A stretch of 64,000 bases of DNA from Phyllobates terribilis (Eukaryota). Positions within the stretch are counted from its first letter, which is position 1. Each line of letters begins with the position of its first letter. Where the stretch lies: assembly GCF_046119375.1 (NCBI RefSeq), contig NW_027362762.1, positions 341,620,001-341,684,000 of the forward strand, written 5' to 3'. This document shows, in pieces, positions 8,452 through 34,530 of this stretch. The notes beneath the pieces were generated by a model. It was given only the letters and a program-made list of their open reading frames with translations. It was not told the origin of the DNA and did not search any database. Made by a program: the position numbers and the translations under genes.

Positions 8452-8492
8452 AGCCCCGACGCGCGTTTCGCGTGTTGCTTCTTCTGGAGGCT
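8452..8492 (-). ncRNA. Minimal type I hammerhead ribozyme motif in the 3' pLTR
   Basis: AGCCUC-CAGAAGA-A-GC-AACAC-GC-GAAA-C-GCGC-GUC-GGGGCU: 6-bp stem I, 2-bp stem II, palindromic loop III, GUC triplet; core position 4 is A instead of U. Confidence 0.7.
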
Positions 8493-9179
8493 GTGATAGA
8501 GCGTGTGGATCGCCATTTTTAAATGCCCAGAATAATTAGGATGCCGGTGTCAATGCCGGTGTATGCAGCGCGTGCGAGAGTTACCGCCCCCCCGAGACGC
8601 GTCATATCCGGCCATTTCCTTTCGGGGCTGTGGGCCGGAACAATGCGTTCCAGTGACGTCAAAGGCCCACCTCCCCATCATACGGAAGCCTTGATGACGC
8701 GACGGGCCGGGGCGGGCCTGCGCACGCGCAGCTCAGCAGTAGACAACGTAAGAAGGGAATAACAACTGGGCAAGTATAATGATACATACAGGCCATACAC
8801 CCGATAACAATATATATAAGCACAACGTGGACACCCATTGTATGTGCCATCAAGACATACCAAAATGAAAATAGCCATCATAAGTTATCCGTCCAAAATA
8901 TTCTAATACCCACATCTCGTAATCAGAAGAATTTAAATAAAAATATATATCTTCAATGGGGCTTTTTAGTGTAGATCATATTATGTTGATGGTATCCAAG
9001 ATTCAACATGTAGGGAATTCATTTCATCCATACTAAGAAGGGTATGTCCAGATAAAGTTGAGATCAGTCCAATTATGGTCCAAGTATGTACCCAAAAAGC
9101 AAATATACTGAAAAAAACAATGAAACAAATAATAATTTAAAATCCACACATAAAAAGGGGAGAGAGAAAAAAGATCAAT

Positions 9180-12100: not shown

Positions 12101-12851
12101 GGATCTTTTTATTGTGTAGGTCTTTTAGTTTAAAAATCAAATCATCACTCTCCCTTGTATTTAAAATCACAGTGGATTCCTCCCCAAAGACCTTATTTAG
12201 TTGGGTGAGCCAGGTCTGCTCACGCTTTTTGTGATCCATGTGTTCGGACCCAGATGCTGTGAAAAGACACAGAATTAACCAGACTTGAACAGTGAACCGA
12301 ACAGAATGGTATAACATTAATAGCATATTAAATGCTAGGGATACTCCCAACTAGACACATCTCCTACAAATGAATGGAGTATAAATCCCACAAGACAAAA
12401 GAGTTACTAAAATATAAATTTTATTAAATTGCAATATAAAAAGAAAAACACACACAATTTGCTTAAAACAGTAAATAGATCCCTTGGGGTAAGAATCACA
12501 CGAAATCAGTTTGGCAAATAGATCTGGGTTCAGATGGTGTCATTCAAGAAATGTAAAAAATATATATAGAGACAGGCACTAAAGAAATATATATCGCGAG
12601 TCCTCAATCCACAGCAACAAAAATCTATATGTGTAGGATACCAAGGTCCAAACATATGAGAGAGGTAAGCCACAATATGCAAATTCTGTAATCAAAAAAG
12701 TACAATATAATTATATGTGGCTAAGAACATCATCCTCCTTCAAATGGAATGAAGGATAGTGTGAGCTGTACATAATAGACTACCCCATAAGGTTATGTGC
12801 CATAGAGTTAATACAGGTTATATGATGCAAACTCCTAAATGACTCACCCAT
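9180..12851 (-). CDS. Penelope-like RT + GIY-YIG endonuclease ORF; predicted exon 1 at 12851-12848, intron 12847-12257, exon 2 at 12256-9180
   Basis: 1056-aa open frame 9180-12350 with DKGGNVVIW, LPKVHK...GRPIVS, DVESLYTSI, GTAMGAACAPSYANLF, YIDD, a Cys-rich linker (CYPCGSCLAC), IIY...YVG...R..EH and a terminal GLN. ATG-G/GTGAGT donor and TTTTCACAG acceptor join in frame to give MASGSEHMDHKK. Confidence 0.9.
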
Positions 12852-12879
12852 CTGTGTAGTAGCCCCTATGCCGCACTGA

Positions 12880-12920
12880 AGCCCCGACGCGCGTTTCGCG
12901 TGTTGCTTCTTCTGGAGGCT
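12880..12920 (-). ncRNA. Minimal hammerhead ribozyme motif in the 5' pLTR
   Basis: Identical to 8452-8492; predicted cleavage at 12886, 35 nt upstream of the predicted ATG at 12851. Confidence 0.7.
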
Positions 12921-12928
12921 GTGATAGA

Positions 12929-14825
12929 GGACGTGGTATTTAAACCGGCAGACAAGGGAGGGAACGTTGTGATCTGGCCAGTCGCAAAATATGAGAAGGA
13001 GGCTTTTAGACAACTGCGGGATAGAGCCTCTTATATCTCTCTATCTAATAATCCATTAACAACCTTTATGGCTGAACTCTTTGACATTCTGGAACGAGCT
13101 TATGAGCAGGGTATTATTCCTAAAAAGATCTTTGATGGCCTATGCACTAAATTTCCAGTGACCCCAACATTTTATCTGCTACCTAAGGTCCATAAGAGCC
13201 TTATGGACCCCCCGGGGCGTCCCATTGTCTCTGGCATTGGAGGGCTGTGTGATCCAGTTTGTAAGTTCATTGAATACTATCTTCATCCACTGGTGGAGAC
13301 GCTGCCCTCCTATGTCAGGGACACTGGTGACGTCCTGAGAAAAATAGAGGGTTTGCATTTGGACACGGATATGACCCTGGTGGCTATTGATGTGGAGTCA
13401 CTTTATACGAGCATAGGTCATGAGGATGGCTTACGAGCCGTTGAGTTCTTTCAGGAGTCTAGTGATTTAAATGCCCCACTTCGTGCACTGTTGATGGAAT
13501 TATTACAATTTATATTGACTCATAATTTTTTCATTTTCAAAGATAGTTTTTTTTTACAGAAACGCGGCACTGCGATGGGCGCGGCGTGTGCCCCATCGTA
13601 CGCTAATCTCTTCCTCGGCTATTGGGAGAGGGAGATTTTCGAGGATGGGGTGGGCGCCGCCTCCCATGCGCAGTGCTGGTATAGATACATTGACGATATT
13701 TTTTCTATCTGGCAGGGTCCCGAGCCTGAGCTACATGAGTTTATCTCCTCTTTAAATCATAACGATCGGAACATCAAACTCACATATAAGTACAATCGGA
13801 GTGAAATTGAATTCTTGGACATTAGGATCATTGTCCAGCAGGATGGCAGGATGGAGACCGACGTCTTCCGTAAGGAGACGTCGGTCAACTCTCTGTTTCA
13901 TGCTACTTCAGCACATACTTCATCTACCATCCGGGCCATTCCTGTAGGACAATATCTAAGAATGAAACGTATTTGCTCTTCAGAGGTGGCTTTTGAGGCT
14001 CAGGCTCGGGACCTTAACCATAGATTTCGGGACCGTGGATACAGTGCACGAAGTATCAAAAGGGGCTACAGACGTGCAAGGAGGACTCCACGAGTCTCCC
14101 TCCTAGTAAATACAACAAAAAAACAGGAGGAGAGAGACTCTCCCATCAGATTTATTTCCACCTACAATAATCGGTGGCAGGAAATACGTGAGATCCTATC
14201 TAGACACTGGCCCATATTAAAAACGGAACCGATACTTAATCAAATCTTACCTGAGAGACCATTAATGACAGCAAGGCGGGGTAAAAGTTTAAAAGACTCT
14301 TTGGTAAGAAGCCACTATGTCGCCCCTTCAACTACTCTGTTTGGAGTTGGAAAACCAAAGTGGGGTTGCTATCCGTGTGGTTCCTGCTTGGCCTGCAGGA
14401 ATATAGAGAGGGCCATGACATTTTCATCCACAGATGGCGTACGGAACTTTAAGATTACCCGTCATATTTCCTGTAGCTCCACGCATATTATTTATATGGC
14501 CCGATGTCCTTGCAATTTGAGTTATGTGGGGCTCACATCTAGGGAATTTCGGGTTCGAGTGAGAGAACACATGCGAGCTATATTGGCAGCACGTGAGGTC
14601 TCTGATTTAGCGCTACTGAAGACTATCCCGCGGCACTTCAAGCTGCGCCACAACTGTGACCCCTCTTGCCTCAAATTCAGAGGCATCGATCAGATACACC
14701 TCGGTAGTCGGGGTGGGGACCACAAGCGTATTTTGGCGCAGCTGGAGTGCCGCTGGATAGCTGTCCTGGACACTGTGACCCCTAGGGGTCTCAATGAGCT
14801 CAATAGTTTTGCTCCTTATTTGTAG
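12929..14825 (+). pseudogene. 5'-truncated inverted copy of the Penelope-like ORF (RT C-terminal part + GIY-YIG)
   Basis: Open frame matches the 1056-aa protein from DVVFKPADKGG onward with 8 amino-acid differences; the annotated start at 12900 lies in pLTR sequence across the inversion junction. Confidence 0.9.
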
Positions 14826-15274
14826 ATTGATCTTTTTTCTCTCTCCCCTTTTTATGTGTGGATTTTAAATTATTATTTGTTTCATTGTTTTTTTCAGTAT
14901 ATTTGCTTTTTGGGTACATACTTGGACCATAATTGGACTGATCTCAACTTTATCTGGACATACCCTTCTTAGTATGGATGAAATGAATTCCCTACATGTT
15001 GAATCTTGGATACCATCAACATAATATGATCTACACTAAAAAGCCCCATTGAAGATATATATTTTTATTTAAATTCTTCTGATTACGAGATGTGGGTATT
15101 AGAATATTTTGGACGGATAACTTATGATGGCTATTTTCATTTTGGTATGTCTTGATGGCACATACAATGGGTGTCCACGTTGTGCTTATATATATTGTTA
15201 TCGGGTGTATGGCCTGTATGTATCATTATACTTGCCCAGTTGTTATTCCCTTCTTACGTTGTCTACTGCTGAGC

Positions 15275-15494
15275 TGCGCGTGCGCAGGCCCGCCCCGGCC
15301 CGTCGCGTCATCAAGGCTTCCGTATGATGGGGAGGTGGGCCTTTGACGTCACTGGAACGCATTTTTCCGGCCCACAGCCCCGACAGGAAATGGCCGGATA
15401 TGACGCGTCTCGGGGGGGCGGTAACTCTCGCACGCGCTGCATACACCGGCATTGACACCGGCATCCTAATTATTCTGGGCATTTAAAAATGGCG
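15275..15494 (+). promoter_or_regulatory. CpG-rich putative PLE promoter (mirror copy on the minus strand at about 8511-8730)
   Basis: NRF1-like TGCGCGTGCGCA (15275), GC box, CRE TGACGTCA (15344), ETS-like GGAAAT, and ATTTAAAAATGGCG (TATA-like plus YY1-like) just upstream of the hammerhead and ATG. Confidence 0.5.
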
Positions 15495-15512
15495 ATCCAC
15501 ACGCTCTATCAC

Positions 15513-15553
15513 AGCCTCCAGAAGAAGCAACACGCGAAACGCGCGTCGGGGCT
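15513..15553 (+). ncRNA. Minimal hammerhead ribozyme motif in the inverted-arm pLTR
   Basis: Exact reverse complement of 8452-8492; GUC ends at 15547. Confidence 0.7.
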
Positions 15554-17741
15554 TCAGTGCGGCATAGGGGCTACTACACAGATGGGTGAGTCATTTAGGA
15601 GTTTGCATCATATAACCTGTATTAACTCTATGGCACATAACCTTATGGGGTAGTCTATTATGTACAGCTCACACTATCCTTCATTCCATTTGAAGGAGGA
15701 TGATGTTCTTAGCCACATATAATTATATTGTACTTTTTTGATTACAGAATTTGCATATTGTGGCTTACCTCTCTCATATGTTTGGACCTTGGTATCCTAC
15801 ACATATAGATTTTTGTTGCTGTGGATTGAGGACTCGCGATATATATTTCTTTAGTGCCTGTCTCTATATATATTTTTTACATTTCTTGAATGACACCATC
15901 TGAACCCAGATCTATTTGCCAAACTGATTTCGTGTGATTCTTACCCCAAGGGATCTATTTACTGTTTTAAGCAAATTGTGTGTGTTTTTCTTTTTATATT
16001 GCAATTTAATAAAATTTATATTTTAGTAACTCTTTTGTCTTGTGGGATTTATACTCCATTCATTTGTAGGAGATGTCCCTACTTTCCTGGCCTGGGTGGG
16101 GGAGGGGACAGATAAGGGCTGATTTAGGAGCTCAGCAAGGCACAAAGCCCTGATGTCTTCCCCATTAGAAGTAATCTGAAGAGCAGGGATAGCTAGGACA
16201 CCCCTAACTTTAGGCATAGGGAAGGAGCCCCTAGCCCTGGGATATCAAACAACAGTGCAGTGACAAGACGCTTGTCAGTCACTGTCAGAAGGCGGGGGGG
16301 AGGAGCCGGCGGTTGACCCACCTGTACAACTAGTCACTTATGCGGCTTGGTCTCCAGCGGCTATCAAAAGTATACCGTTCTCTGAAACACTGCAATGGTT
16401 CAGAATCAAACATACCTGCATGTGATTGTACAGCCAGTGGCTGATACATGCTGCCCACAGTTTGGGCAGCATCTGTCACCTGTCAGATTCCCTTTGAACA
16501 GTAACTCTAATATGTTCAGTGCTGGTGGTCACAAGTGCTCAGATGCTCAGTCAGTCCACCAGGATCCTCTTGTACACAGAGGGCTGAATGATTCCTCCTA
16601 CGGGGTAGATTAGACAAGGTGAATTAGTGCACAAGAAGCGGCTTCTTTTTGCAAAACTACATTTTTTCTAATCTAAAGAAAGATACTTTTGATAACATTA
16701 TGCATAAAAAAACTTCTACATAAAAATGATCCTATAGGGTATTGCTGCAGAAGAAAGATATAATAATATGCAGAAAACAGATTTACGTGACTATGCTCTT
16801 CTACCTATTCAACGTAATTGTAATTTTCTAATTATAGAAGAACGTGTTGATGTGACTGAGGGCAGAAATTTGCTTAAGCTTGGAGAAAAGTAAATAAATA
16901 AGTATACCCATTAAACTGATCATTAACGCAGAGTGTAAATTAAAAATCAATATCATTATTTTTAATGGCAGTCATTTCTGTAACACCGAAAAAAACTTGC
17001 TGATGAACTAGTAGAAGACCAAAACACTTAGCTTATTACTCCATAATTGGCCTCTTCTAGGCTGCTGGTTTCCACCACCTAGAGATTTACACATGGTGGA
17101 GATAATTTTGCCATGATCACTGTTCCACTCAACTGCAAAAGCTATTCATTATTCAGCATGAAGTAATTGTGGGTTAGCGAGAAGCCAATAACTCCAGAAA
17201 TATCGCATTACGGTCACGTTATTTAATAGGTTTACTATTTAGAAAATACTGCATATCTAATTGTAGTGTACAAGGAAATGACATCTAAGGTGACCTAGAT
17301 TGTATTTTCTTCCCACGGGCTCAGATCCAATTTATTGATAATTTTTATAGGATACAGTGTTACATATACTGTAGTATGAAATATCAAGTGATGCTGAGAA
17401 AACTACAATGATATTGTTGTATTATTTCTTAGTTCATAGCAACATACTGTAGACTTGCACAGTTTGAGTATAATATAATCTGATAAAAAGAAAGATAATC
17501 TTCATTTAAGCAAAAGGGAGAGGGGCATGTAAATAAAACTGATTTTCAGCCATATTGTGGCTAAACCATGCCTGCTATGTGTGCCTATTGGTTTCAAGTT
17601 CAATATCGGTCATTTATTTCTACTACAGCTGTATAAAACTGGGACAATATAACCAGTGATTCGGAAGGCAAAGACAGGCCTTATTCAGATGTCTATTTTT
17701 CACATACATGTTCTGTCTGTATTGTTCACGGTAAGAACACA

Positions 17742-18744
17742 TGTGGCACCCCAGGGGTCTGGTTTCCCACAGTAATGTAATGTTATGTCTGAGAGCAGGT
17801 GGGAGGTCCTTTGGTCAGGGATCCTGTGCATGCCACACCTCCTGCCCAGTCTTGGGAGGGGAAGAACTTCCCCTATATAAACCCGGGGCTGAGGCAGGGT
17901 GAGGAGTAGAGAAGAAGTAGAGACGAGAAACAGTCATAGGAAGAAACAGCAGAAGCTCAGTGGGAGCAATACTACTACGAGTCAGGGGCTGGCAGCTGCA
18001 GAGCTCGCCCTGACTGAGAAGCTTTCTTACCGGACCCGGCGTCCGAGGCTGTGGGGACTAACTCTTACCCAGCAGCAAAAGCCGACCGGCAGGGGATTTC
18101 AGGTCCCCAGGCCCAGAAACCCAAAGGCACGGTCACACGCGTGGGACCAGCAGCGCCATCGTGGAGCGGAAGCCATAGAAGGCCCCGAGTCACCGGCCAT
18201 ACGGGTGAGCACCACACGGTACACTCAGGGACGTGGGCTACTTATATCCGCTTCTAGCAAGGTAGCCAGAGGAGTACAGTCAGTTTGGGAGGCCTACAAC
18301 TCCGCCTGGCCAGGGGAGATCCCATCTGCTCAAGGACTGACCAGGCCCCGTTCGCTAGCAAGTACTCCGGGAGGGTCTATCGTTGTTACCAGTAAAGACC
18401 CTGAATTACACCGCACCGTCTCTGAGTGGTTCCTGCTACCCCCATCTTCCACGACGGCTGCCCTGAGGCCATACCCCTCCCGTTGGGGGTTATACTATCA
18501 CGCTGCACAATTCTACACCGGCCTCAGCGGTCTGCCCTGCAGCGGCAGCTCCATAGCTGCAAATCAACGGGTGGCGTGGTCGACACTCAAATAACATCTA
18601 TCAAGACTGCCACACACTGAGTTTGACTCCCTGGGCACGGACCGGGTCCCCGCCACTCGGAGACTACAACCCTCATCTGATCCGGTTCCGGGTAAGCCCC
18701 GTGCGCGAGACGCTGCGCGACACAGCAGGCCCAGGGGCGCGTCA
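17742..18744 (+). mobile_element. Solo LTR related to the cold-shock-domain element LTR
   Basis: TG...CA termini, 4-bp TSD CACA, TATATAAA near 17874, AGTAAAGACCC, and several U5 blocks shared with 20118-21332. Confidence 0.85.
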
Positions 18745-19544
18745 CACATACCTATTACAATCAATGTGGCTGTTCACAATTTAGAGTTTTTTTGTCAACC
18801 AAACAGTCCAGAAAAATAGCAGAGACATGTCCAGTTTTGATCTGAGTCATGGATCAAAATTACCCATAAAAGTCTATAAGTCCATAAAAATCAGGGACAA
18901 CACAGGGATGCAATTTTTTAGCATTGCACTGGGTAAGAAAAAAATCCCTGATGCAATATTGCTGGTAACAGCTAAAACACTGACTTCTGAATAAGGTATA
19001 AAGACCAGGGTCAGGACTAGATATTTTGGTGCCCTAGGCAGTTGAAGTCTATGGAGACTCCACCCCTCAGCCCCCAAGCAAAGGAGTGGGTTAGAGTCTA
19101 AGGTAACAGGACCCCTAATGCACCCTCCTCCGATAGGTCAGGTAACAACCTCTTACTATCATTTCCACTAGAATTGTTATCTTTTTCACCTAAAATACCA
19201 GCAAAAAAAGTAAAAAAGTGGTGTACTTTAGGGGTGAGGCTCAACAGGGTCTGCAATTTCAAAGTTAGATATAGATATAGAATCATTCATTATTTGGGGA
19301 GCATTTACACAATACGAGGGACAAATAGCAATATTCATCCTTGACATCCTATATTTTAAATGTCAGACAGAAGGACAGTCATGGAAACTAATATTGATTA
19401 ACTATAATGGGGGCAGTTTGGTTTCAATTAAAGTGTCCAGCATTTGGCGGATATACTAATGGAAATTAAACAGAACCCATGATAAATAAAGGGATAAGTC
19501 TGAAGATTTTTGAGTCTGCCATGTAACAAAAACAGCTTGCAACA

Positions 19545-20110
19545 AAGCTGATGGTGGTTCTAGTGTCATATTCCCATTCTGATTGTTGTTCTGGTGATAT
19601 ATTTCTGTTTAGATAGTGGTTCTGGTTTACAAATTACTGTAGCGATGGTTATTCTACTGCTGTATTCATATACTACTGAAGGTTCTGATGTTGTATTCAT
19701 GTAGTGATGACGATCCTGGTGATGTATTCATGTAGGCATGGTTATTCTTGTGACATATTCATCACCAAAACCACCATCAGTATATGACTACGAAACCAAC
19801 AACAGTACATGAATAGAACACCAGAGCCATCAATAGCACATAAATACAACACTAGAACCATCATTAGAAAATAAATAGGTCACTAAAACCACCATCAGCA
19901 CATAAATATGTCACCAGAACCACCATCAGTAAATGAATACAATGCAAGTACCATCATAAGTACATGAATGCATCAACAGAACCACCATAAGTACTTGAAA
20001 ACAAGAACCAAGCTTAGTACAGCAATAAATAGTAATGTCAGGTCAGCCCCATACACAATTGTATTGCATGAACCTACAACTCCCAGTATGTCCTTAACAA
20101 TGGCAAGTAG
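19545..20110. repeat. Degenerate minisatellite of about 30 bp, in two opposed orientations
   Basis: GCTGATGGTGGTTCT-type units to about 19740, then ACCACCATCAG-type units; target of the LTR insertion at 20118. Confidence 0.5.
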
Positions 20111-20431
20111 ATGCTGGTGTAGCACCCTGAGGATTCGGCTGCTACAGGGGTATTGCACCTCAACCCAGAGGTGTGATATTCCACTCCCGGGTAAGGATGG
20201 AGTGTGGATCTGAGCTCAGATAGACTGCATGCACTACATACATCCCATTCCAGAGGAGCAGGCCGACGGTACTCCCACTTAGAAATGTGCAGGTACAACC
20301 GAGCCTGTTCCTGGCTGGAGTGGGAGGGGGGTGGTACATCCCATGTAGTGTAGGGGCAGAAAGGGGGAGCAGTCTGGGTAGTGATAGGAGCTCATTGGGT
20401 GCTGGTCACCTGAGCTCACACATAGAGGGTG

Positions 20432-20962
20432 TATATAAGGTGGGCACCATCAAAGATCAGGGTCAGACGCAGAGAGGAAGTCAGATGCAGAGGACAAGCC
20501 TGCAGCAAGAGAGAGAAAGAAACAACAGCCCTGGAGAGAGAGTGGAGTGCAGAAAGACCCAGAGGGGGACAAAGAAGGGACCCAAGAACCCAAATAAGAA
20601 CACCGGGTGAGGAGTCAGCAGAAGGGTACCGGAACCCAAGCTGGTGGGGGCAAAGACATTCCCCAGCCAGAGACCGGAGACCGTGGGCAGTGTCTGTCAC
20701 GGTCACCCACTACATTCACCCTGAAGGCACACCACATGGAGGGTCAGGGAACCTTAGGCCAAAGGTTGCCCAACAGAAGGCCCGAGGGAGCTGGATTTAG
20801 GTGAATCACTGGTGGGGACGGCTGAAGAAAGGACAGAGGGAGAGCTCAGGGCCACGCTCCGGACTTGTTTGGGGGTTGGCTGGATCCAGGACCTGGTGGA
20901 CGCAGCACGGCTCGGGAGGTCACTTGGAGCTAGAGTGACCAGGAACATCTGCAGTAAGTAAA
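20432..20962 (+). promoter_or_regulatory. LTR TATA box (20432-20438) and AGTAAA polyA-signal variant (20957-20962)
   Basis: TATATAA and AGTAAAGACCC both occur in the related solo LTR at 17742-18744. Confidence 0.55.
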
Positions 20963-21336
20963 GACCCTTAACTGCACAACCCGAGTCTGTCATCATTACC
21001 GGCTGCACCGCACCACCACAACCCCCATCCTCTGCGCCTGTCCCCTCTGAGGCTATACCCCTCCCGTTGGGGGTTATCCCACCAAGCTGTGCACCCACCA
21101 TCAGCCTCAGCGGACCCTGCAGCAGCGGCGGCCACAGTGACCGCATCACAACGGGTGGCGTAGTCGACACAACGAACTTTAATAACATCAGTAAGGACTG
21201 CCACATAACACTGAGCTTGACGCCCTGGGCACGGGACCGGGTCACAGCCGCTCGGAGACTACAACCCCCCCCCCATCTGATCCGGTGCCGGGTATTCCCC
21301 TCAAAAAGGAATATGTCCCAGGGGGCGCGTCAACTT

Positions 21337-21355
21337 TGGCGTAGTCGGCAGGATT
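21337..21355 (+). promoter_or_regulatory. Primer-binding site complementary to the tRNA-Ser 3' end
   Basis: TGGCGTAGTCGGCAGGATT, 4 nt after the 5' LTR; reverse complement of the vertebrate tRNA-Ser end AAUCCUGCCGACUACGCCA (recalled sequence). Confidence 0.9.
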
Positions 21356-21591
21356 ACGTGCCCGCAACACCCGGGTACTGCGTGCCTGAAGAAAAGTGCA
21401 AGTTTACCTCAGAAAGAAGTCTCCCGCCGGTTCCGGAGGGTCCACGCCATCGGACTCCATCACCAGTCGTTTCCCGCCGATTGTCCGCCATTTCCAGCTT
21501 GTTCCCGCCATCTGCAGAGTTTCCCGCCACTGGGAAGCGATTCCCGCCAAAACCGCAGATTTCCCGCCCTGGAAGAGCAGCGGACGCCATT

Positions 21592-23367
21592 ATGGGCGTG
21601 CCAAAGGAGAGCAAGAGGCTACCTCCCATCGTGGGCCGGGACAGAAAATGGCGCCAAAAGTGGAAACCGCCCCCACCAACAGAGACTGTGATGCTGGAGG
21701 TGTCTGTCAGCGTGAAAGAACTCCCCCTGGAGCTGACAGTCACCGAGTTGCCCCGGGACCGCCCTCGAAGTAGGAGGAGACGAAAGAAAAGAGAAAAGAT
21801 GGGTGTCGCTTGGAGCAGTCTAGAACGAGCGCACCCGGAGGCAAGGTGTCTAGAGCGAGAGCACCCGGAGTCGAGGAGAGAAAGAGTAGACCCGGGAATG
21901 GAGCGGCAGCAGAGCAGCACCGGCCCGCTGGCCAGGAGCCTGCTGGAGGAAGAAGGAGGAGAGCAGAGCAGCACCGACCCGATGGTCAGGAGCCTGCTGG
22001 AGTCAACAACCCCGCTAGGCTTAGCGGAGATCCTGGCGCAGCTTCCCCGAGACCGGGAGTGCGCGCGGAGTGCCCTGGAGGGCCTCGCGGGAAGGATGGC
22101 CCGAGTGCAGAGGGAGATCCTGGCGGAGTGGGGCCGGGAGATGGCCCAGCAAGCTGGAACCCGTCCACGGAGCCCGCTCCCTTGGAAGAAGACATCGACT
22201 GCCTCTGCGGATGACGCGGGAGGACCCAAGGCCGGAGACGGCGCAGAAGAGGGAGCGAGACGCATGGCAGCGGGTAAGGGGGACGCCTATACCCCATACC
22301 GGAAGACCGCTTACCTGCCCCAGCTCCCCGTCGCAGAGCCCGAAGGTCCCCCGGCCGTACCCGAGACCGCCATGACACCGCCACCGACTAGGCCCCGACC
22401 GGAAGCCGCCGTCGCGACCCCGGTGACGTCACGCGTCGTGACCCGGAGCGTGGCGAAGGAGGAGGAGCCTCCGGCCTGGTCGCAGGGCCTAGCGTTTCCG
22501 GGCGCCGCATCCCCAGCAGAGCCATCTACCTCCGCGGAGCCTCCGGCCTGGTCGCAAGGCCAGGTAGCCCAGGGCGCCGCCGTCCTAACAGTTCCATTTA
22601 CCTTCCAGATGCCCCCGGCCTGGCCGCAAGGCCTGGGCAACCTGGGTGCCCCCACCATCGCGCCCGCACCCGCAACACCAAGGGTGCCATATCTGGGAGA
22701 GGACCCCTTCAGCCAGCTAACGTGGCCGGACGGGCGGCCTTTCATCTGGCCCAAAGAATTCTTGGAACTGGAGCGACAAAAGAAGTTGGGGCCCTTGTGT
22801 GAGCCCCTAATCCCGGCTCCGAAGCCCGTGACTCGGGTCTCGCCTCCACTCGAGGAAGCCCAGTTCGTGTGGGACCCCACGGGAGAAGATTTGATGGGGT
22901 TCACCGGAGAGACTCGGGCAGCTGCAGCAGAGCGTACCGAGTGTTGCCGTCAACAGCTGGCAGAGTTCAAGAGAGAGCGGGAGGAGAGGCGGGCCAGAGA
23001 GCAATGGGCCCAGACCCGCAGCGCGGAGCAAAAGAGTCGGACCAGAAGGAACCCCCGTGCAGCAGATCGTCCCCGTACCATCGGGACGGTAATAAAGTTT
23101 AATGCGCAGCATGGGTGGGGCTTCATAAGGGACCGGAACACCATGGGTGACGTCTTCGTTACTCGACGGGACGTCGAGTCCCACCTTCCAGAGGGTCACA
23201 AAGGCCGTGACCTCTACGTCGGTGACGAGGTAACGTTCACCCGGCACAAGTGTGCCAAGGGACCTTATGCCCTCCACGTGCACCGCCTGACGGAGGAGGA
23301 GTTGCGGTGTAGGGAGGAGGAGCCAGAAGACCCGGACGGGTTCAAGGCTAGAAGGTACTATGACTGA
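21592..23367 (+). CDS. 591-aa protein: basic, proline-rich and coiled-coil low-complexity regions with a C-terminal cold-shock domain (about 23080-23290)
   Basis: ATG 21592 has A at -3 and G at +4; the frame is open from 21067 (another in-frame ATG at 21313). CSD: GTVIKFNAQHGWGFI (RNP1), DVFVT (RNP2), LYVGDEVTF, KGPYALHV. Confidence 0.85.
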   Translation: MGVPKESKRLPPIVGRDRKWRQKWKPPPPTETVMLEVSVSVKELPLELTVTELPRDRPRSRRRRKKREKMGVAWSSLERAHPEARCLEREHPESRRERVDPGMERQQSSTGPLARSLLEEEGGEQSSTDPMVRSLLESTTPLGLAEILAQLPRDRECARSALEGLAGRMARVQREILAEWGREMAQQAGTRPRSPLPWKKTSTASADDAGGPKAGDGAEEGARRMAAGKGDAYTPYRKTAYLPQLPVAEPEGPPAVPETAMTPPPTRPRPEAAVATPVTSRVVTRSVAKEEEPPAWSQGLAFPGAASPAEPSTSAEPPAWSQGQVAQGAAVLTVPFTFQMPPAWPQGLGNLGAPTIAPAPATPRVPYLGEDPFSQLTWPDGRPFIWPKEFLELERQKKLGPLCEPLIPAPKPVTRVSPPLEEAQFVWDPTGEDLMGFTGETRAAAAERTECCRQQLAEFKREREERRAREQWAQTRSAEQKSRTRRNPRAADRPRTIGTVIKFNAQHGWGFIRDRNTMGDVFVTRRDVESHLPEGHKGRDLYVGDEVTFTRHKCAKGPYALHVHRLTEEELRCREEEPEDPDGFKARRYYD

Positions 23368-23818
23368 AATAGTACAAAGGACTGTATATAGTTACCTGTC
23401 GGGGTACCCAAGTAACCGTGGCTGCTTTAAAGTTTAGTCCCCGTTGGGACCAGTGAACTGTTTACCTGTGTGACCCCTTCCATACCAGGCTGAGGACTGT
23501 GAGCAGCCATCCCTTTCCCTTTACCTGGCCGGGGACTGAGAACGGCCAAAATTTCCCTGTATATAGTTGCGCTTCCTAAAGCGCCCCCTACCGGTTTTAT
23601 AGGAGAAACCATTTTTCTAGAAAGACTGTCGCACTTTTCCCGGACACACGTTGCACAGTGTCCGGAGGAGGAACCTGAAACCAGAGAAGTCTACGAGAAT
23701 GTTTATATAGAAAAAAGTTTTATATATATATAATGTTTATATGTTTTATATGTTCATATAAAAATTTTGTATGTTTTGGTGTTTTGTCTTACAGCCCGAG
23801 GACGTGCTGTGGTTTACC

Positions 23819-23827
23819 AGGGGGGAA
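23819..23827 (+). promoter_or_regulatory. Polypurine tract
   Basis: AGGGGGGAA abutting the 3' LTR TG. Confidence 0.75.
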
Positions 23828-26237
23828 TGTAGCACCCTGAGGATTCGGCTGCTACAGGGGTATTGCACCTCAACCCAGAGGTGTGATATTCCACTCCCGG
23901 GTAAGGATGGAGTGTGGATCTGAGCTCAGATAGACTGCATGCACTACATACATCCCATTCCAGAGGAGCAGGCCGACGGTACTCCCACTTAGAAATGTGC
24001 AGGTACAACCGAGCCTGTTCCTGGCTGGAGTGGGAGGGGGGTGGTACATCCCATGTAGTGTAGGGGCAGAAAGGGGGAGCAGTCTGGGTAGTGATAGGAG
24101 CTCATTGGGTGCTGGTCACCTGAGCTCACACATAGAGGGTGTATATAAGGTGGGCACCATCAAAGATCAGGGTCAGACGCAGAGAGGAAGTCAGATGCAG
24201 AGGACAAGCCTGCAGCAAGAGAGAGAAAGAAACAACAGCCCTGGAGAGAGAGTGGAGTGCAGAAAGACCCAGAGGGGGACAAAGAAGGGACCCAAGAACC
24301 CAAATAAGAACACCGGGTGAGGAGTCAGCAGAAGGGTACCGGAACCCAAGCTGGTGGGGGCAAAGACATTCCCCAGCCAGAGACCGGAGACCGTGGGCAG
24401 TGTCTGTCACGGTCACCCACTACATTCACCCTGAAGGCACACCACATGGAGGGTCAGGGAACCTTAGGCCAAAGGTTGCCCAACAGAAGGCCCGAGGGAG
24501 CTGGATTTAGGTGAATCACTGGTGGGGACGGCTGAAGAAAGGACAGAGGGAGAGCTCAGGGCCACGCTCCGGACTTGTTTGGGGGTTGGCTGGATCCAGG
24601 ACCTGGTGGACGCAGCACGGCTCGGGAGGTCACTTGGAGCTAGAGTGACCAGGAACATCTGCAGTAAGTAAAGACCCTTAACTGCACAACCCGAGTCTGT
24701 CATCATTACCGGCTGCACCGCACCACCACAACCCCCATCCTCTGCGCCTGTCCCCTCTGAGGCTATACCCCTCCCGTTGGGGGTTATCCCACCAAGCTGT
24801 GCACCCACCATCAGCCTCAGCGGACCCTGCAGCAGCGGCGGCCACAGTGACCGCATCACAACGGGTGGCGTAGTCGACACAACGAACTTTAATAACATCA
24901 GTAAGGACTGCCACATAACACTGAGCTTGACGCCCTGGGCACGGGACCGGGTCACAGCCGCTCGGAGACTACAACCCCCCCCCCATCTGATCCGGTGCCG
25001 GGTATTCCCCTCAAAAAGGAATATGTCCCAGGGGGCGCGTCACTGGGAGTTGTTGTTGCTATCAGTCTTTATCAGATTGCGGACCATACAGGAGCCACAG
25101 CACTGATGAGACACAGGCAGGATCCCAAATAAAATTTGACAATCCAGGTATCTTACAAGTGACATCTTCCGTGATTGGAGTCGTTCTCTTTCTCTTCGTC
25201 TCCATCTTGTCTAGACACCATGTTGACTTCTATCCACAGATCGTCTCTACCGACTTCCATCCTGTCGGGTTTTCTTCAACACATCCTGCCATGATGCCCT
25301 TAAAAAATAAGAGTGTTATTAAACTATTATTAAAAACATCTGTCTATACTCTGCCCTAAATAAGCCTCTTATTGTATATGGCCTCCACACTCTCTGCCCT
25401 TATGAGATATAAACCCACCACAGTGATTAGTGACTGTGCTTACAGCTCCATGCTCATGTGTGGATGAGAAATATGATCCTACACCAACCAGACAGCATGG
25501 AGCTCAGGCATCATAGTCACTAAACTACTGATTCTAATCAGTAACTCCTGCAGAAGCTGGCAGGCAGCAATTTGCATTCTCGGCAATCCTCATCTTTACT
25601 GAAGAGTCCCTGGGTCCCTATGTGCAGACGCCGCTCAGCATAGGCTGGAGGAGGGGAGCTGAAGGTTGTAAGTGGCTGAGGAGAGGACGAGCGGGAGGAG
25701 GAGCAGCCTGCATGCATGGCCTTGAGGCCGGCGTGTCAACGCTGTGGAGCTACAGCGCGTGGCACTGGTTTTGAATTTGAACCGAGGCACAGGCTCGTCA
25801 GCGACTGACATCGCTCACCACAGTGCCTGTGCCCCGGCTGTCGGGGTGCTGAATGCTTGCGGCCAGAAGAAGGTGCCTGGTGGTGGGAGGAAGTTGCCTG
25901 GCGGCCACAGGCATTCAGCAATGTCAGTTTGTTTTTTGTTTTTTTTTACACTGCACCCCCCTCAGGGAGGCAAGAGTTAGTGCCCTAGGCAGGTGCCTTC
26001 CCTGGCGGCGTACCCCTCATCTCGACCCTGCTAAGGGATATAACGCAAGGCACAAAGTCTGAATGGCAGCCCTATGGTTCTGCATCATCAAGTTGTGGGT
26101 ATTTTGTAAGCAGTGTATTATGGCCTCATAAACTTCTATGGGTGCCATAAGAAGAATCTGTACAGTACAGAGCCCATAGCCATAAAGGCACATACAAACA
26201 ACATCACTGCCCACTTTGCTTGATTTTTAACATGATA

Positions 26238-26714: not shown

Positions 26715-28096
26715 TTCATGATGGGCACAGAACAATCACTAATAGATCAATCTGTCCCCATACAGTATCATGTTATCAGCAGCACATCTGCAGTTTTCAC
26801 CGGGTGATGTGCTACTGAGAACAAGGATGTTTGTTCCAGCATTAACAATCCAATCAATCGATGAATAGACAGCATTTTGCAAGTTTAGTATAATGCACTT
26901 TCACAGTCCTCCACATAGTATAAAGCACTCCCCATAGTCCTCCATACAGTATAATGCTCTACCCATATTCCTCTATATAGTATAATGCACTCCCACAGTC
27001 CTCCATATAGTATAATGCACTCCCCATAGTCCTCCATACAGTATAATGCACTCCCCATATTCCTCCAAATAGTATAATGCACTCCCCATAGTCTTCCATA
27101 CAGTATAATGCACTCCCCATATTCCTCCATATAGTATAATGCGCTCCCATAGTCCTCCATATAGTATAATGCACTCCCCATAGTCTTCCATACAGTATAA
27201 TGCACTCCCCATATTCCTCCATATAGTATAATGCACTCCCAATATTCCTCCATATAGTATAATGCACTCCCCATATTCCTCCATATAGTATAATGCACTC
27301 CCCATATTCCTCCATAGAGTATAATGCACTCCCCATAGTCCTCCATACAGTATAATGCTCTACCCATATTCCTCTATATAGTATAATGCACTCCCACAGT
27401 CCTCCATATAGTATAATGCACTCCCCATAGTCCTCCATACAGTATAATGCACTCCCCATATTCCTCCAAATAGTATAATGCACTCCCCATAGTCTTCCAT
27501 ACAGTATAATGCACTCCCCATATTCCTCCATATAGTATAATGCACTCCCATAGTCCTCCATATAGTATAATGCACTCCCCGTAGTCTTCCATACAGTATA
27601 ATGCACTCCCCATATTCCTCCATATAGTATAATGCACTCCCAATATTCCTCCATATAGTATAATGCACTTCCCATATTCCTCCATATAGTATAATGCACT
27701 CCCCATATACCTCCATAGAGTATAATGCACTCCCCATAGTCCTCCATACAGTATAATGCACTCCCCATAGTCTTCCATACAGTACTCCCCATAGTACTTC
27801 ATACAGTATAATACACTCCCCATAGTCTTCCATACAGTACTACCCATAGTCTTCCATACAGTATAATGCACTCCCCATAGTCTTCCATACAGTATAATGC
27901 ACTCCCCATAGTCTTCCATACTGTACTCCCCATAGTACTCCATACAGTATAATGCACTCCCCAAAGTCTTCCATACAGTACTCCCCATAGTACTTCATAC
28001 AGTATAATGCACTCCCCATATTCCTCCATATAGTATAATGCACTCCCCATATTCCTCCATATAGTATAATGCACCCCTCATATTCCTCCATATAGT
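26715..28096 (-). repeat. 31-bp minisatellite array (about 26890-28096) with its unique subterminal flank; same family as 39369-41204, inverted
   Basis: Unit TAGTATAATGCACTCCCCATATTCCTCCATA with shorter variants; 26715-26890 is the reverse complement of about 40835-41010. Confidence 0.9.
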
Positions 28097-28465
28097 AACA
28101 TAGTAACATAGTTTTTAAGGTTGAAGGAAGACTAAGTCCATCTTGTTCAACCCATAGCCTAACATGTTGATCCAGAGGCAAAAAAAAACATGTGGCAAAC
28201 ACTAAGCTCCACGTTGGGGAAAAAAAATTCCTTCCTGACTCCATACGACAATCAGACTAGTTCCCTGGATCAATGCCCTATCAAGGAATCTAGTATATAT
28301 AACCTGCAATATTATACTTTTCAAGAAAGGCATCCATGCCCTTCTTAAATTTTAGTAGTGAATCACTCATTACAACATCATGTGGCAGAGAGTTCCATAG
28401 TCTCACTGCTCTTACAGTAAAGAATCCGCATCTGAGATTATGATTAAACCTTTTTTCCTACAGAC
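28090..28465 (-). mobile_element. CR1 LINE 3' end
   Basis: (GTAACATA)n tail; minus-strand FFTVRAVRLWNSLPHDVV-type ORF2 C-terminus. Confidence 0.8.
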
Positions 28466-30140: not shown

Positions 30141-31822
30141 TGTTAGAACCCTCCTGTTTGTTTTTGTTTCTATCTTGTGTTTTGCAGTCACGTGATCATC
30201 TTCCTATATATTCCAGCTCCGCCCTTCTGGCTTTGCTGGACTTCAGTGTTGTTTTGACTGTCTCTCTAGCCAGGTGCTTTTGTGCCTATCTATCTCTAGT
30301 TTGCTTGGTCCTCTGGGACCTCTAGTACTTTTTGTCAGTTTATCTTTTGCTCTGCAGCAACTTCTGTTAGGAGGTGTCCCATTTTTGTCTCAGTCCTTAG
30401 TTCCTTTAGGGACCCCTCCCTTTCTCTATAGGTCTCCGTTAAGACTAGCCGAGGACGAAGGCGGGTCTGTTCACAAGGAACAGGTAGCCCGCTACAACGT
30501 AGGGGCTCAGCTTAGTCTTACTGTAGGGACAGCTCTCCCCTTCTTTCCCAAGCCTATGTTGCAGATCATAACAGTAAGTCCAGCCCAAACAAAAACTTTA
30601 AGGAAAGAAATCCGGGGATCAGTATGGTTTCTGTTCAAGATTTGGCTCAACGCCTGCAGGGATGGTCTCTGGAGGTGTCCGAGCTCCGGCAACAGGTGAG
30701 TAGCTGTTCTGTAGCGCATTTTGTGGAACCGAAGGTAGGACTGCCTGATATTTTTTATGGTAAACAACAAGATTTTTTTTCCTTTAAAATTGCTTGTTTT
30801 TTATATTTTCGTTTGAGACCAAGGTCCTCTGGGAATGAATCTCAGCGCATTGGGTTTATCATGTCACTTTTGCGCAAGGAACCACAGGGGTGGGCCTTTT
30901 ATCTCCAACCTAATGATCCGTGTTTTAGGTCAGTGGAGGATTTTTTTTCTGCTATGGGGCTATTGTACGACGATCCTGATCGAGTCTCATCTGCTGAGAC
31001 AGAACTGAGGCGTTTGAATCAGGGGTCAGGTGATGTTGAAAATTATTGTACACACTTCAGAAGGTGGTCCTCAGAAGTGAAATTGAATGATTCGGCGTTA
31101 AAATGTTTCTTTCTTGCTGGCCTAAGTGAAAGGGTTAAGGATCTGCTTATTGCATTCCCTGCACCTGAGACCTTGCAGGAAGCCATGCAATTAGCTATAC
31201 GTGTGGACAGGAGACTGCGTGCCTGGGTTAATTATGAAAAAATTCCTGCAATGGCAGCTCTTAGTCCCCAGAGGGTCTGCTCGGATGGCGGAGAACCGAT
31301 GGAGGTTGAGGCGATGTCACTCCGCTCTCAGGAAAGAGACCGCAGGTTTTCCAAGGGATTGTGTTTTTATTGTGGTAAACCTGACCATTTGATTAAGAAC
31401 TGTGAGCTTCGTTTAAGTAAAGAAAAAAAAAAGGTCAGTTACGCCCGTATTGCTTGTTTGAGCTCTAAGGGAGTATTTCTTTCAGGGAGTACCTCATTGC
31501 GAGAAGATTTGATTGAATTTCGGGTATTTGTGGATTACTCACAAGGTTGCGGCATTTCCCCTCACTATCAATGGTACTTTTTGTCAGTTTATCTTTTGCT
31601 CTGCAGCAACTTCTGTTAGGAGGTGTCCCATTTTTGTCCCAGTCCTTAGTTTCTTTAGGGACCCCTCCCTTTCTCTATAGGTCTCCGTTCAGACTAGCCA
31701 AGGACGAAGGCGGGTCTGTTCACAAGGAACAGGTAGCCCGCTACAACGTAGGGGCTCAGTTTAGTCTTACTGTAGGGACAGCTCTCCCCTTCTTTTCTTA
31801 GCCTATGTTGCAGATCATAACA
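30141..31822 (+). mobile_element. Internally deleted sushi-type Gypsy element: 5' LTR 30141-30573, gag, partial 3' LTR 31574-31822
   Basis: TGTTAG...ATAACA LTR; 31574-31822 repeats 30324-30573 with roughly 3 percent differences; pol absent; TSD not found. Confidence 0.85.
30624..31619 (+). CDS. gag: Sushi-type Gag with CCHC zinc knuckle, fused to LTR sequence after the deletion
   Basis: LPDIFYG, LNQGSGDVENYCTHFRRW, EPMEV, CFYCGKPDHLIKNC (31362-31403); VFVD marks the truncated protease start. Confidence 0.8.
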   Translation: MVSVQDLAQRLQGWSLEVSELRQQVSSCSVAHFVEPKVGLPDIFYGKQQDFFSFKIACFLYFRLRPRSSGNESQRIGFIMSLLRKEPQGWAFYLQPNDPCFRSVEDFFSAMGLLYDDPDRVSSAETELRRLNQGSGDVENYCTHFRRWSSEVKLNDSALKCFFLAGLSERVKDLLIAFPAPETLQEAMQLAIRVDRRLRAWVNYEKIPAMAALSPQRVCSDGGEPMEVEAMSLRSQERDRRFSKGLCFYCGKPDHLIKNCELRLSKEKKKVSYARIACLSSKGVFLSGSTSLREDLIEFRVFVDYSQGCGISPHYQWYFLSVYLLLCSNFC

Positions 31823-32124: not shown

Positions 32125-34037
32125 ATAATAATATAATAATAATAATAGTTAATTTTTATAGCGCCAACATATTCCGCAGCACTTTACAAATTTTAGGGGG
32201 GACTTATACAGACAATACAGAATAAGCATATCTCATATCGAAAGGAGTGAGGGCCCTGCTCGCGAGCTTACAGTCTATGAGGAAGTGGGGGAGACACAAA
32301 AGGTAAAAAGTACATATATTGTATAATGCAGCCTTGATATACTGAATAGGATAAATAATAATACATGAACTGGTCGCCAGCCAGTATGTGTGCAGTCCTG
32401 ACAGAGGCTTTTATGTGCATGGTTGGTTTGAACCCGAAGTTGAAGAAGATTTTAATATGGGGGAAACCTGGGATGGACACAGTGTGTTTAGGTGATACGC
32501 CAGTCTAAAGAAATGTGTTTTTAGGGTTCGCTTGAAACTGTGGGTATTGGGAATTAATCGAACTGTCCTGGGTAGTGCATTCCAGAGAATTGGCGCAGCA
32601 CGCGAGAAATCTTGGAGACGGGAGTGGGAAGTTCGGATTATGGAGGATTTTAGTTTCAAGTCATTTGCAGAACGCAGGGCACGTGTAGGGTGGTAGACTG
32701 AGACGAGGGAGGAGATGTAGGGGGGTACTGAAGCATGGAGCGCTTTGTGGGTACGCGTGATAAGTTTAAAATGAACTCTATATTGGATGGGCAACCAATG
32801 CAATGACTGGCACAGGGAAGAGGCATCTGAGTAGCGGTTGGCGAGGAATATGATCCTGGCTGCTGCGTTCAGGACGGATTGGAGAGGGGAGAGTTTAGTA
32901 AGAGGGAGACCGATTAGTAGAGCGTTGCAATAGTCAAGACGAGAATGAATAAGAGCTACAGTAAGAGTTTTTGCCGAGTCAAAGGTGAGAAAAGTCCTGA
33001 TTCTTGAGATGTTTTTGAGGTGTAGATGACATGAACGAGCGAGTGATTTGATGTGAGGAGTGAAGGAAAGATCTGAATCAAAAATGACCCCAAGACAGCG
33101 GGCTTGTTGCTGGGGAGCAATGGTGGAGCCACAAACAGAAATGGCAATATCGGGCACAGGTAGGTTAGTGGAGGGAGGAAAGACGAGTAGTTCAGTTTTT
33201 GACAGATTCAGTTTTAGGTAGAGGGAGGACATAGTGTTAGACACAGCAGAAAGACAATCACTGGTCTTTTGTAATAATGCAGGGGTGATGTCCGGAGCAG
33301 AGGTGTATAATTGGGTGTCATCAGCATAGAGATGGTACTGAAAACCGAATCTACTGATTGTTTGTCCAATAGGAGCAGTGTATAAGGAGAAAAGAAGGGG
33401 GCCTAGGACTGATCCTTGAGGAACCCCGACAGTAAGAGGAAGTAGGGAGGAGGAGGAGCCGGCGAAAGACACAGAGAAGGAGCGGTCAGAGAGATAGGAG
33501 GAGAACCAGGAGAGAACAGTGTCCTTGAGGCCGATAGAGCGGAGCATAATGAGGAGGAGCTGGTGATCCACAGTGTCGAATGCTGCAGAGAGATCCAGGA
33601 GAATCAGCAGGGAGCAGTGACCATTAGATTTAGCTGTTAGCAGATCATTAGAGACTTTAGTGAGGGCAGTTTCAGTAGAATGTAAAGAGCGGAAACCAGA
33701 TTGTAAAGGGTCAAGAAGAGAGTTGTCTGAGAGATAGCGGATTAGACGGGAATGGACCAGGCGTTCCAGGAGTTTAGAGATAAAGGGAAGATTGGAAACA
33801 GGTCTGTAGTTGGCCGTGCAGTTCTGGTCGAGGGATGGTTTTTTAAGTAATGGTTGTATGCTGGCGTGTTTAAAAGAAGAGGGAAAGATACCAGATGAGA
33901 GGGAAAGGTTGAAAATTTTAGTTAGGTGAGTGGTGACAGCTGGAGCAAGGGACTGAAGGAGATGTGAGGGAATAGGATCGCTGGTGCAGGTGGTAGGGCG
34001 AGAAGATGCAAGGCTTCTGGCAGAAGGACACATCCCT
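32125..34037 (-). mobile_element. 5'-truncated L2-clade LINE with an open 540-aa RT segment (32411-34033)
   Basis: [46 protein letters not shown]; (TAA)n-type tail at about 32125-32150. Confidence 0.92.
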
Positions 34038-34249
34038 GATTATACTATAGATACCAGTCATGTATTGTCATATAAACTATACAGGGCCATACCTATGGGA
34101 ATCAGGGGGGGCATGTGACCTGGGTACAGCCGTCAGGGGGGTGCCTTCGGGCCACCTCATGTGGTGGTCAGAGGTGTCTCCCAGGTAGCGGCATTTTGCA
34201 TTCGACCATTCTCTGAACTGGCTATGGAACCAACAATCGATCAGAGGAG

Positions 34250-34530
34250 GGAGCTATGTACGGGCTCATATTGTATGTAGGGAGCTATGTGGGTGCTCAT
34301 ACTGTATATAGGGAGCTATGTGGGGCTCATACTGTATATAGGGAGCTATGTACGGGCTCATACTGTATATAGGGAGCTATGTGGGGGCTCATACTATATA
34401 TAGGAGGCTATGTGCGGGCTCATATTGTATATAGGGGCTATGCGGGATCTCATACTGTATCTAGGGAGCTATGTGGGGGCTCATACTGTATCTAGGGAGC
34501 TATGTGAGGGCTCATACTGTATATAGGGGG
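34250..34530. repeat. 31-bp minisatellite
   Basis: GGGAGCTATGTGGGGGCTCATACTGTATATA, about 9 copies. Confidence 0.85.

Follow-up and report, generated by a model that had tools for sequence, protein, structure and literature searches.

A long terminal repeat (LTR) retroelement with a single long open reading frame (ORF), which encodes a protein containing a cold-shock domain (CSD), was found at positions 20118–25042 of a 64,000-nucleotide stretch of the Phyllobates terribilis genome (contig NW_027362762.1, positions 341,620,001–341,684,000 of the forward strand; this whole stretch is referred to as the window hereafter). In our judgment, there is about an even chance that this element belongs, as a young copy, to a long-lived, non-autonomous LTR family of hyloid frogs, in which the CSD protein replaces Gag/nucleocapsid and which is mobilized by a helper. 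The observations that carry this reading are the complete cis machinery of the element, the absence of enzyme genes, the recurrence of the layout in other frogs, and the selection seen on the CSD.

Structure and age of the element

The element is 4925 bp long and was delimited by a direct-repeat search and base-by-base comparison. Unless another locus is named, the positions given here are those of the window, and the features lie on the plus strand. The 5′ LTR (20118–21332) and the 3′ LTR (23828–25042) are each 1215 bp long, begin with TG and end with CA, and show no mismatch in 1215 bp. They are bordered on the left and the right by the target-site duplication CTGG (20114–20117 and 25043–25046), which was also identified by base-by-base comparison. 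A 19-nt primer-binding site (PBS; 21337–21355) lies 4 bases past the 5′ LTR. The PBS sequence occurs only once in the window, where no occurrence is expected by chance; it is the exact complement of the final 19 nt of human tRNA-Ser-AGA/TGA in the sequence given by PMC10359600, and is also present in the tRNA-Ser templates in PMC3299991. At the other end of the interior, a polypurine tract with the purine run AGGGGGGAA (23819–23827) adjoins the 3′ LTR. The interior between the LTRs is 2495 bp long, and the GC content of the element is 54–59%, against 37–50% in the background. The element therefore has both the TG..CA repeats with a target duplication and the PBS with a polypurine tract that characterize LTR retroelements. 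Reverse transcriptase (RT), RNase H and integrase, which an autonomous LTR retrotransposon should encode, were not found in it. Judged by sequence, its termini and 4-bp target duplication would fit an endogenous retrovirus (ERV) and a Ty3-like element alike.

Because the 1215-bp LTRs show no differences and the target duplication is intact, the insertion is considered to be very recent. When a neutral rate of ~1e-9 per site per year is assumed (our own assumption), the 95% upper bound on its age is ~1.2 million years, with the caveat that perfect LTR identity could in principle stem from assembly polishing. An earlier note on this DNA, made from the letters alone, had described a recently mobile, non-autonomous element with identical LTRs, a CTGG duplication, a 19-nt tRNA-Ser PBS, a polypurine tract and a 2495-bp interior with one intact ORF. 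All of these features are present in the sequence, and the combination of fully identical LTRs with the lack of an enzyme gene agrees with that description.

Several further signals were found in and near the LTRs, some of which recur in related elements at other frog loci (L001–L006, described below) and in a related solo LTR within the window. U3, R and U5 were assigned by eye only. The 5′ LTR contains TATATAA at 20432–20438 and AGTAAA at 20957–20962; the latter is a candidate poly(A) signal and is shared with the solo LTR. At the 5′ end of U3, the initial ~30 nt (20118–20146) constitute a terminal inverted repeat, TGTAGCA..TGCTACA, in the form of a short hairpin. This hairpin is also found in L001 (TGTGGCG..CGCCACA), L003, L004, L005 and the solo LTR, and the changes among them are compensatory: RNAalifold gave 11 pairs, 5 of which have double-sided changes, for an alignment of only six sequences. 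A leader block of ~40 nt located just 3′ of the PBS is conserved in the Anomaloglossus element L001; a scan of metagenome and viral contigs for the PBS/leader pattern gave no match. Another conserved block, 18 nt long (15–18 nt; 23792–23809), is located ~20 nt upstream of the polypurine tract and follows a pyrimidine run ending in CAG (run and block together, 23780–23809). It is identical in the window element, L001 (~11990–12015) and L003 (~12286–12311), although the other non-coding sequence of these three elements has diverged, and it is recognizable in the Bufo element L005 (~11735–11760). The run and the block look like a 3′ splice site in their sequence, and a possible splice donor (GGTAC or GGTGA) is present in the conserved leader after the PBS. 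Rfam gave no match in window positions 17500–25500, and ARAGORN detected no tRNA gene within the window.

The ORF and its cold-shock domain

The ORF (21313–23367) encodes 684 amino acids from the first in-frame ATG, which sits 20 nt inside the LTR end. The frame is open from stop to stop from 20962, and the first alternative start would give an ORF of 21067–23367. Further ATGs in good context occur at 21592, 21799 and 22096, the last of which is the annotated start of the Phyllobates homologue. None of ten start variants of the ORF had an exact match in the protein collection, which indicates that the window copy is unannotated.

The CSD was recognized at 23083–23283 by Pfam, AlphaFold2 (AF2) and Foldseek. 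The profile PF00313 matched with 35.7 bits (E=7.7e-9), above its gathering cut-off of 27, and was the sole Pfam domain in the ORF. From a shallow, 10-sequence family alignment, AF2 predicted a five-strand beta barrel at residues 588–658 with a pLDDT of >90, so that both the profile score and the OB-type barrel expected of PF00313 were found. Foldseek searches returned only CSDs from the PDB, with TM scores of 0.86–0.90 to CspA/CspC (0.88 for CspA) and 0.77–0.79 to YB-1, and only CSD/OB folds from the viral models. The matches in a PDB sequence search were likewise all cold-shock proteins, with a Corynebacterium Csp at the top (28.5 bits) and YB-1/YBX2 at ~25 bits. A C-terminal CSD had been noticed by eye in the earlier note, and the profile match and the predicted barrel bear this out; only 27 residues follow the domain.

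All members of the family alignment have GxGF (RNP1) and FV (RNP2). At the position of the RNP2 His they have T, N, A or G, and the strand-1 Trp is lost in every aligned member except P0037; a family-specific signature, FVxRR(D/S)V, stands in place of the lost residues. The alignment is thus in line with what had been read from the window copy, namely, that the RNP1 and RNP2 aromatics are kept while the strand-1 Trp and the His of VFVH are replaced.

The region upstream of the CSD has a different character. Its first ~530 residues are mostly of low confidence or disordered in the AF2 model and are rich in Pro, Ala, Arg and Glu. Helical segments are predicted at residues 482–491 and 223–280 (21979–22152; pLDDT 73–84), and helices similar to the latter were seen by eye near the N-termini of other family members. 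In the Pro/Ala-rich, predicted-disordered middle of the ORF, two 72-bp tandem copies (22464–22607) encode repeated PPAW motifs, of which the window copy has three. A long, highly charged helix is predicted at residues 532–579 (22906–23049; pLDDT ~90), and an Arg-rich linker joins it to the CSD. This helix can be aligned in the homologues P0001 and P0002, and more loosely in the Anomaloglossus protein P0003. In the model, the charged helix and the linker beside the CSD are consistent with a nucleic-acid-binding module.

Viral domains were looked for in several ways. A regular-expression check of the ORF found no CCHC, protease, YxDD, PPxY or PTAP motif, and Pfam found no gag family there. Neither a capsid fold nor a relic of one was detected in the N-terminal part, either by AF2 on the shallow alignment or by Foldseek against the PDB and the viral models; a cryptic capsid fold upstream of the CSD, which the earlier note had proposed to look for by structure prediction, was thus not found. 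The ORF accordingly has neither the helical capsid fold nor the CCHC motif by which a Gag is recognized. In the other frames of the 2495-bp interior, no RT or integrase motifs were found except for one chance YGDD on the antisense strand. These results uphold the earlier statement that capsid, CCHC, protease, RT and integrase are absent. The ORF occupies the gag position, and the CSD is its only recognizable domain.

Related elements in other frogs

The family was gathered by an exhaustive phmmer search of 1.84 billion representative proteins. The closest protein, P0001 of Phyllobates terribilis, is 93% identical to the window protein. More distant homologues were found in Ranitomeya variabilis (P0002), R. 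imitator (P0004), Anomaloglossus baeobatrachus (P0003 and P0006) and Bufo bufo (P0046, labeled by NCBI as 'Y-box-binding protein 2-A-like'), and another family protein, P0037, came from a sequencing run. The gene model of P0004 is a chimera spliced to distant exons, and only its first exon is derived from the element. One candidate, P0033, proved to be a CSD protein from a marine protist or microbe and was dropped from the family. In all members tested, Pfam recognized the CSD and no other domain, with scores of 23.7–43.1 bits in the relatives, and the N-terminal parts of the proteins can barely be aligned. Between the window copy and loci L001–L006, the CSD segment shows 37–60% amino-acid identity.

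At five of the five other loci read (L001–L005), LTR sequence was found around the CSD ORF. In Anomaloglossus, L001 is an element of 4869 bp located within satellite DNA, with LTRs of 1284 bp that are 99.5% identical. Its PBS differs from that of the window element but has the same form (TGGCG...CAGGAT), and presumably matches another tRNA-Ser isodecoder. The second Anomaloglossus element, L003, has LTRs of 1150 bp as aligned (~1147 bp when trimmed to TG..CA) with 99.8% identity, a TAAA target duplication and the PBS of L001; its ORF is split by a nested foreign insertion of ~4.6 kb, and the element measures ~5.0 kb once this insertion is subtracted. In Bufo bufo, L005 (4836 bp) has LTRs of 1132 bp that are 96.8% identical and an L001-type PBS with one mismatch. 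The remaining two copies are less complete: L004 of R. variabilis has a 3′ LTR of ~1.1 kb, a truncated 5′ LTR fused to the ORF and no PBS, and L002 of R. imitator has degraded LTR starts, ~85% identical, flanking a short CSD ORF. A tRNA-Ser-type primer site is therefore present at three of the five other loci.

Three features of this set bear on the history of the family. One is that the LTR identities at the other loci are spread over 99.8%, 99.5%, 96.8%, ~95% and ~85%, which indicates activity over a long period in several lineages. Another is that BLASTN between species detected only three stretches, namely, the PBS/leader block, the 18-nt block and a CSD-coding stretch of ~100 bp (70.6%, L002), while the remaining LTR and interior sequence has diverged past detection; this pattern indicates long-separated lineages that have retained a common set of cis signals and a common gene. 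Anomaloglossus alone harbors at least two diverged lineages. The last feature is that the hosts of the LTR-flanked CSD ORFs belong to Dendrobatidae, Aromobatidae and Bufonidae, from which it follows that the acquisition of the CSD predates these lineages. The CSD is an old, family-wide feature and not a recent capture by the window copy. The earlier proposal that the window element itself had captured the CSD is therefore contradicted by LTR-flanked homologues in three frog families with 37–60% identity.

Individual copies showed additional characteristics. In the bufonid-type copies (L005, 9515–11089; L006, Logan SRR23595345), the CSD is not C-terminal. L005 has a 155-amino-acid ORF and a 362-amino-acid CSD ORF in one frame, with a single stop codon between them. 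A PPxY motif, reminiscent of a Gag late domain, is found 45–70 residues upstream of the CSD in L005 and L006 (PPAY and PPSY). At L004 (9217–11149; LOC143808358), which lacks a PBS, the truncated 5′ LTR is fused to an open CSD ORF of 382 amino acids that is a RefSeq gene; this could be an immobilized copy, or a copy undergoing domestication under an LTR promoter. Anomaloglossus and Bufo copies lie inside long tandem satellite arrays (L001, 7784–8450 and 13320–13853; L005, 689–7874 and 13542–21363), and this location may reflect a bias of insertion or retention toward satellite or heterochromatic DNA. The ~4.6-kb foreign element nested in the CSD ORF of L003 (5367–9983) has a perfect target duplication of 263 bp (5104–5366 = 9984–10246). 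Its long ORF appears by eye to be Penelope-like, with an RT YIDD motif and a GIY-YIG-like C-terminus; Pfam gave no match for this ORF. A 68-bp stretch of the nested element matches the RT-bearing repeats of the window described below.

Selection on the cold-shock domain

Nei–Gojobori proportions were calculated for the CSD codons of seven copies. The synonymous proportion pS was 0.67–1.0, that is, saturated, while the nonsynonymous proportion pN was 0.24–0.52; where dS could be estimated, omega was 0.15–0.5. The closest pair, the window ORF and P0001, was compared by the distribution of amino-acid differences. Among 415 aligned residues, 31 differences were found, none of which falls in the 87-residue stretch covering the CSD. 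For the 67-residue Pfam CSD, we calculate from these counts that the chance of finding none of the 31 differences is P ~0.004. These sequence comparisons indicate that the CSD is under purifying selection, and the check for maintenance of the ORF by selection, which the earlier note had called for, thus gave a positive answer.

Proposed mechanism and alternative explanations

Transcription, RNA binding and mobilization in trans are the steps that we infer. The element would be transcribed from its own LTR. The CSD protein would then bind the single-stranded RNA of the element, probably in cis during translation, and might serve as an RNA chaperone or coat in place of Gag/nucleocapsid, with a function like that of LINE-1 ORF1p. 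The resulting ribonucleoprotein would be reverse-transcribed and integrated by the RT and integrase of an autonomous relative, and this helper would recognize the same tRNA-Ser PBS, polypurine-tract region and LTR ends. Host YB-1 is a replication cofactor of HIV and assembles with the Gag and RNA of MMTV (PMC6040738, PMC4486188), and in view of this role it is plausible that an element would encode a CSD as an adaptation. More tentatively, and with clearly less than an even chance, we propose a more specific form of this view: the family would be an old 'semi-autonomous' LTR lineage, predating the split between Bufonidae and Dendrobatoidea and still active, in which the CSD protein replaced Gag, so that the element supplies its own RNA coat or chaperone like LINE ORF1p and depends on a helper only for RT and integrase and possibly for capsid. 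To replicate in this way would be new among the LTR elements described so far.

Several points weigh against the proposal that a helper mobilizes an element whose CSD protein replaces Gag/nucleocapsid. Neither the window nor the ~147 kb of frog loci L001–L006 revealed a helper element, and mobilization in trans is assumed. The RNA binding, cis-preference and particle entry of the CSD protein are presumed roles, and the packaging, stabilizing and anti-silencing roles suggested in the earlier note are likewise hypothetical. Of the four stacking residues found in canonical CSDs, two are changed here (the strand-1 Trp and the RNP2 His), so that nucleic acid may be bound in a different mode. The motif check showed that the window copy lacks a capsid-interaction or late-domain motif, and the first ATG of its ORF is only a candidate translation start. 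Furthermore, because annotated proteins led to the related loci, their frames are open by ascertainment, and they give no measure of the fraction of genomic copies that are intact.

Some of these observations could be read differently. The CSD protein might be an accessory factor acting on host pathways and not a substitute for Gag/nucleocapsid, which we regard as unlikely. In its explicit version, to which we give the same low weight, the protein might mask or stabilize the mRNA of the element as FRGY2/YBX2 does in oocytes, raise its translation or blunt small-RNA silencing, with packaging left wholly to the Gag of a helper. The length of the CSD loop, which resembles that of Y-box CSDs, the NCBI name of the Bufo homologue, the failure of AF2 and Foldseek to reveal an oligomerizing capsid-like fold, and the help that host YB-1 gives to several steps of retroviral replication all speak for such a role. 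However, the CSD shows no greater similarity to YBX than to bacterial Csp, the protein lacks the Y-box C-terminal tail, and the same evidence serves a model of a chaperone acting in cis equally well. A quite unlikely explanation is that the element arose by deletion from an autonomous retrovirus or retrotransposon that carried a CSD, with the ORF as a passive remnant that has no role in its spread. The existence of CSD-carrying bird ERVs would agree with this, the splice-acceptor-like block and the possible donor after the PBS look like relics of a more complex genome, and the PPxY upstream of the CSD in the bufonid-type copies hints at an ancestry in a Gag p12-like protein. Nevertheless, the short layout of ~4.8–5 kb recurs in the window element, L001 and L005, as well as in L003 (~5 kb without the nested insertion), a gag-pol-bearing relative was seen at none of the loci read, and purifying selection on the CSD persists through a divergence during which a passive remnant would decay.

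We consider it improbable that the CSD ORF has turned, or is turning, into a host gene that is driven by an LTR promoter and retained because it serves the host and not the element. L004 speaks for this, having a truncated 5′ LTR fused to the ORF and no PBS, and yet an open ORF with a RefSeq gene model, and several homologues are annotated as genes. Such an explanation may hold for single copies of this kind but not for the family: the identical LTRs, the intact target duplication, and the full PBS and polypurine tract mark the window copy as a fresh transposition, copies occupy unrelated loci in satellite or repeat DNA, and at least two diverged lineages exist within Anomaloglossus. As for an artifact, the region has a GC content of 54–59% and many overlapping ORFs open on both strands, so that a chance open frame, or an assembly error behind the LTR pair, might be suspected. 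The probability of this is close to nil: the Pfam score is above the gathering cut-off, the fold is predicted with confidence, and homologues occur in the same context in five other frog genomes. The reading as a chance ORF is effectively refuted.

Other features of the window

The related solo LTR mentioned above (17742–18744; 1003 bp) has its own target duplication, CACA. Its termini, TGTGGCACCCC...GCGCGTCA, are similar to those of the element, and it contains a TATATAAA box and shares the AGTAAAGACCCT motif with the element. Its identity to the final ~280 bp of the LTR of the element is 75%, and it is a separate, older insertion located 1.4 kb upstream of it.

Other repeats are dispersed over the window. 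At 7854–16084, two repeat copies of ~3.2 kb stand head-to-head (7921–11076 versus 16084–12929) with 99.5% identity; each has a long ORF with a weak RVT_1 match, and they are probably Penelope-like elements. At 30325–31822, a 331-amino-acid ORF with Retrotrans_gag/Ty3-capsid similarity (30624–31619) lies between direct repeats of 249 bp, which show 96.8% identity and lack TG..CA ends; an RT ORF is located on the opposite strand (32411–34033). This region could represent either a rearranged Ty3-like element or a further fragment with gag only. At 47078–51625, inverted 275-bp repeats with 96% identity enclose a Tc1/mariner-type transposase remnant (HTH_Tnp_Tc3_2 and DDE_3; 47248–48027, minus strand) and a 36-bp tandem array (48266–49142). 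Related 31-bp satellite arrays occur in both orientations at 26886–28097, 39816–40837, 34248–34528 and 19763–20010; the 'TPR' Pfam matches of the ORFs at 26962–27792 arise from translation of the 31-bp repeat. A separate, degenerate 31-bp array ends ~100 bp before the insertion site of the element.

Comparison with known systems

The CSD shares with the Y-box proteins (YBX1/2/3 and FRGY2) and LIN28 the long, eukaryote-type beta3–beta4 loop: the alignment with YB-1 is nearly gapless, whereas that with bacterial Csp needs a 5-residue gap in this loop. However, the identity with YB-1 is ~33% and its score (25.5 bits) is no better than that of bacterial Csp (28.5 bits). Unlike the Y-box proteins and LIN28, the frog protein has lost the RNP2 His and the strand-1 Trp, and it has neither a C-terminal basic/acidic tail nor CCHC knuckles. 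Judged by its sequence, it would not be placed in the YBX family, whose members are closest to YBX CSDs and carry C-terminal basic/acidic clusters. The name 'Y-box-like' used in the earlier note therefore holds weakly, for the loop but not for the score or the tail.

Among vertebrate LTR retroelements, those that encode a PF00313 domain are the nearest likeness. A 2025 survey of 758 bird genomes (Mol Biol Evol) found 46 ERVs encoding CSDs, which were acquired several times in two ERV groups, and its authors argue that the acquisition represents adaptive convergence and is adaptive for the virus (PMC12287698). The capture of a CSD by retroviruses is therefore already known. The bird ERVs were classified by their RT proteins and hence retain RT, and the position of the CSD varies among them (PMC12287698). 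The frog element differs in having no gag, pol or env, in having the CSD protein as its sole gene, and in a layout that is heritable across three frog families; the frog and bird CSDs themselves are set side by side here by description, not by sequence. In the literature searched, which did not extend to Repbase and Dfam, we found no amphibian LTR element with a CSD, no element that lacks gag-pol and has a CSD protein as its sole gene, and no evidence that a layout of this kind remains stable and under selection from one host family to another. The earlier statement that no described family with this layout was known must be qualified in view of the published bird ERVs.

The dependence on a partner has other precedents. 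Mouse ETn/MusD and VL30 and plant LARD/TRIM and BARE2 are non-autonomous LTR elements that are mobilized in trans and have no ORF or a defective gag. The frog element resembles them in its complete LTRs, PBS and polypurine tract without RT or integrase, in its presumed dependence on a partner and in its recent activity, but it keeps a selected ORF for an RNA-binding domain other than Gag. In transducing retroviruses, a truncated gag (delta-gag) is fused to a cellular gene; these are replication-defective, short-lived laboratory or tumor isolates. In both cases a cellular-type domain replaces viral genes between intact LTRs and a helper is required, whereas the frog lineage has diversified in the germlines of several families under purifying selection. 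Non-autonomous LTR elements are usually regarded as gene-less parasites of their helpers, and the capture of a host gene by retroviruses as an accident that does not last. In the helper-dependent frog lineage, the only gene retained is a captured-type RNA-binding domain, and selection on it extends over three frog families and reaches a copy whose LTRs have not diverged. A one-ORF element of 4.9 kb offers a tractable system for asking what a retroelement parasite must encode, and it may help to explain the expansion of poison frog genomes driven by transposable elements.

LINE-1 ORF1p and nucleocapsid, which bind or chaperone single-stranded nucleic acid through an RNA-recognition motif with a C-terminal domain or through CCHC knuckles, are the proposed functional analogues of the frog protein. 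What they would share is an element-encoded single-strand binder or chaperone with an adjacent helical region. The fold of the frog protein is instead an OB-type CSD, and the likeness is drawn by analogy, with any trimerization or cis-preference of the frog protein putative. If the protein serves the RNA of its own element, an OB-fold CSD can stand in for nucleocapsid or ORF1p. Given that bird retroviruses have acquired CSDs independently, CSD proteins would then represent a recurrent solution to the handling of retroelement RNA.

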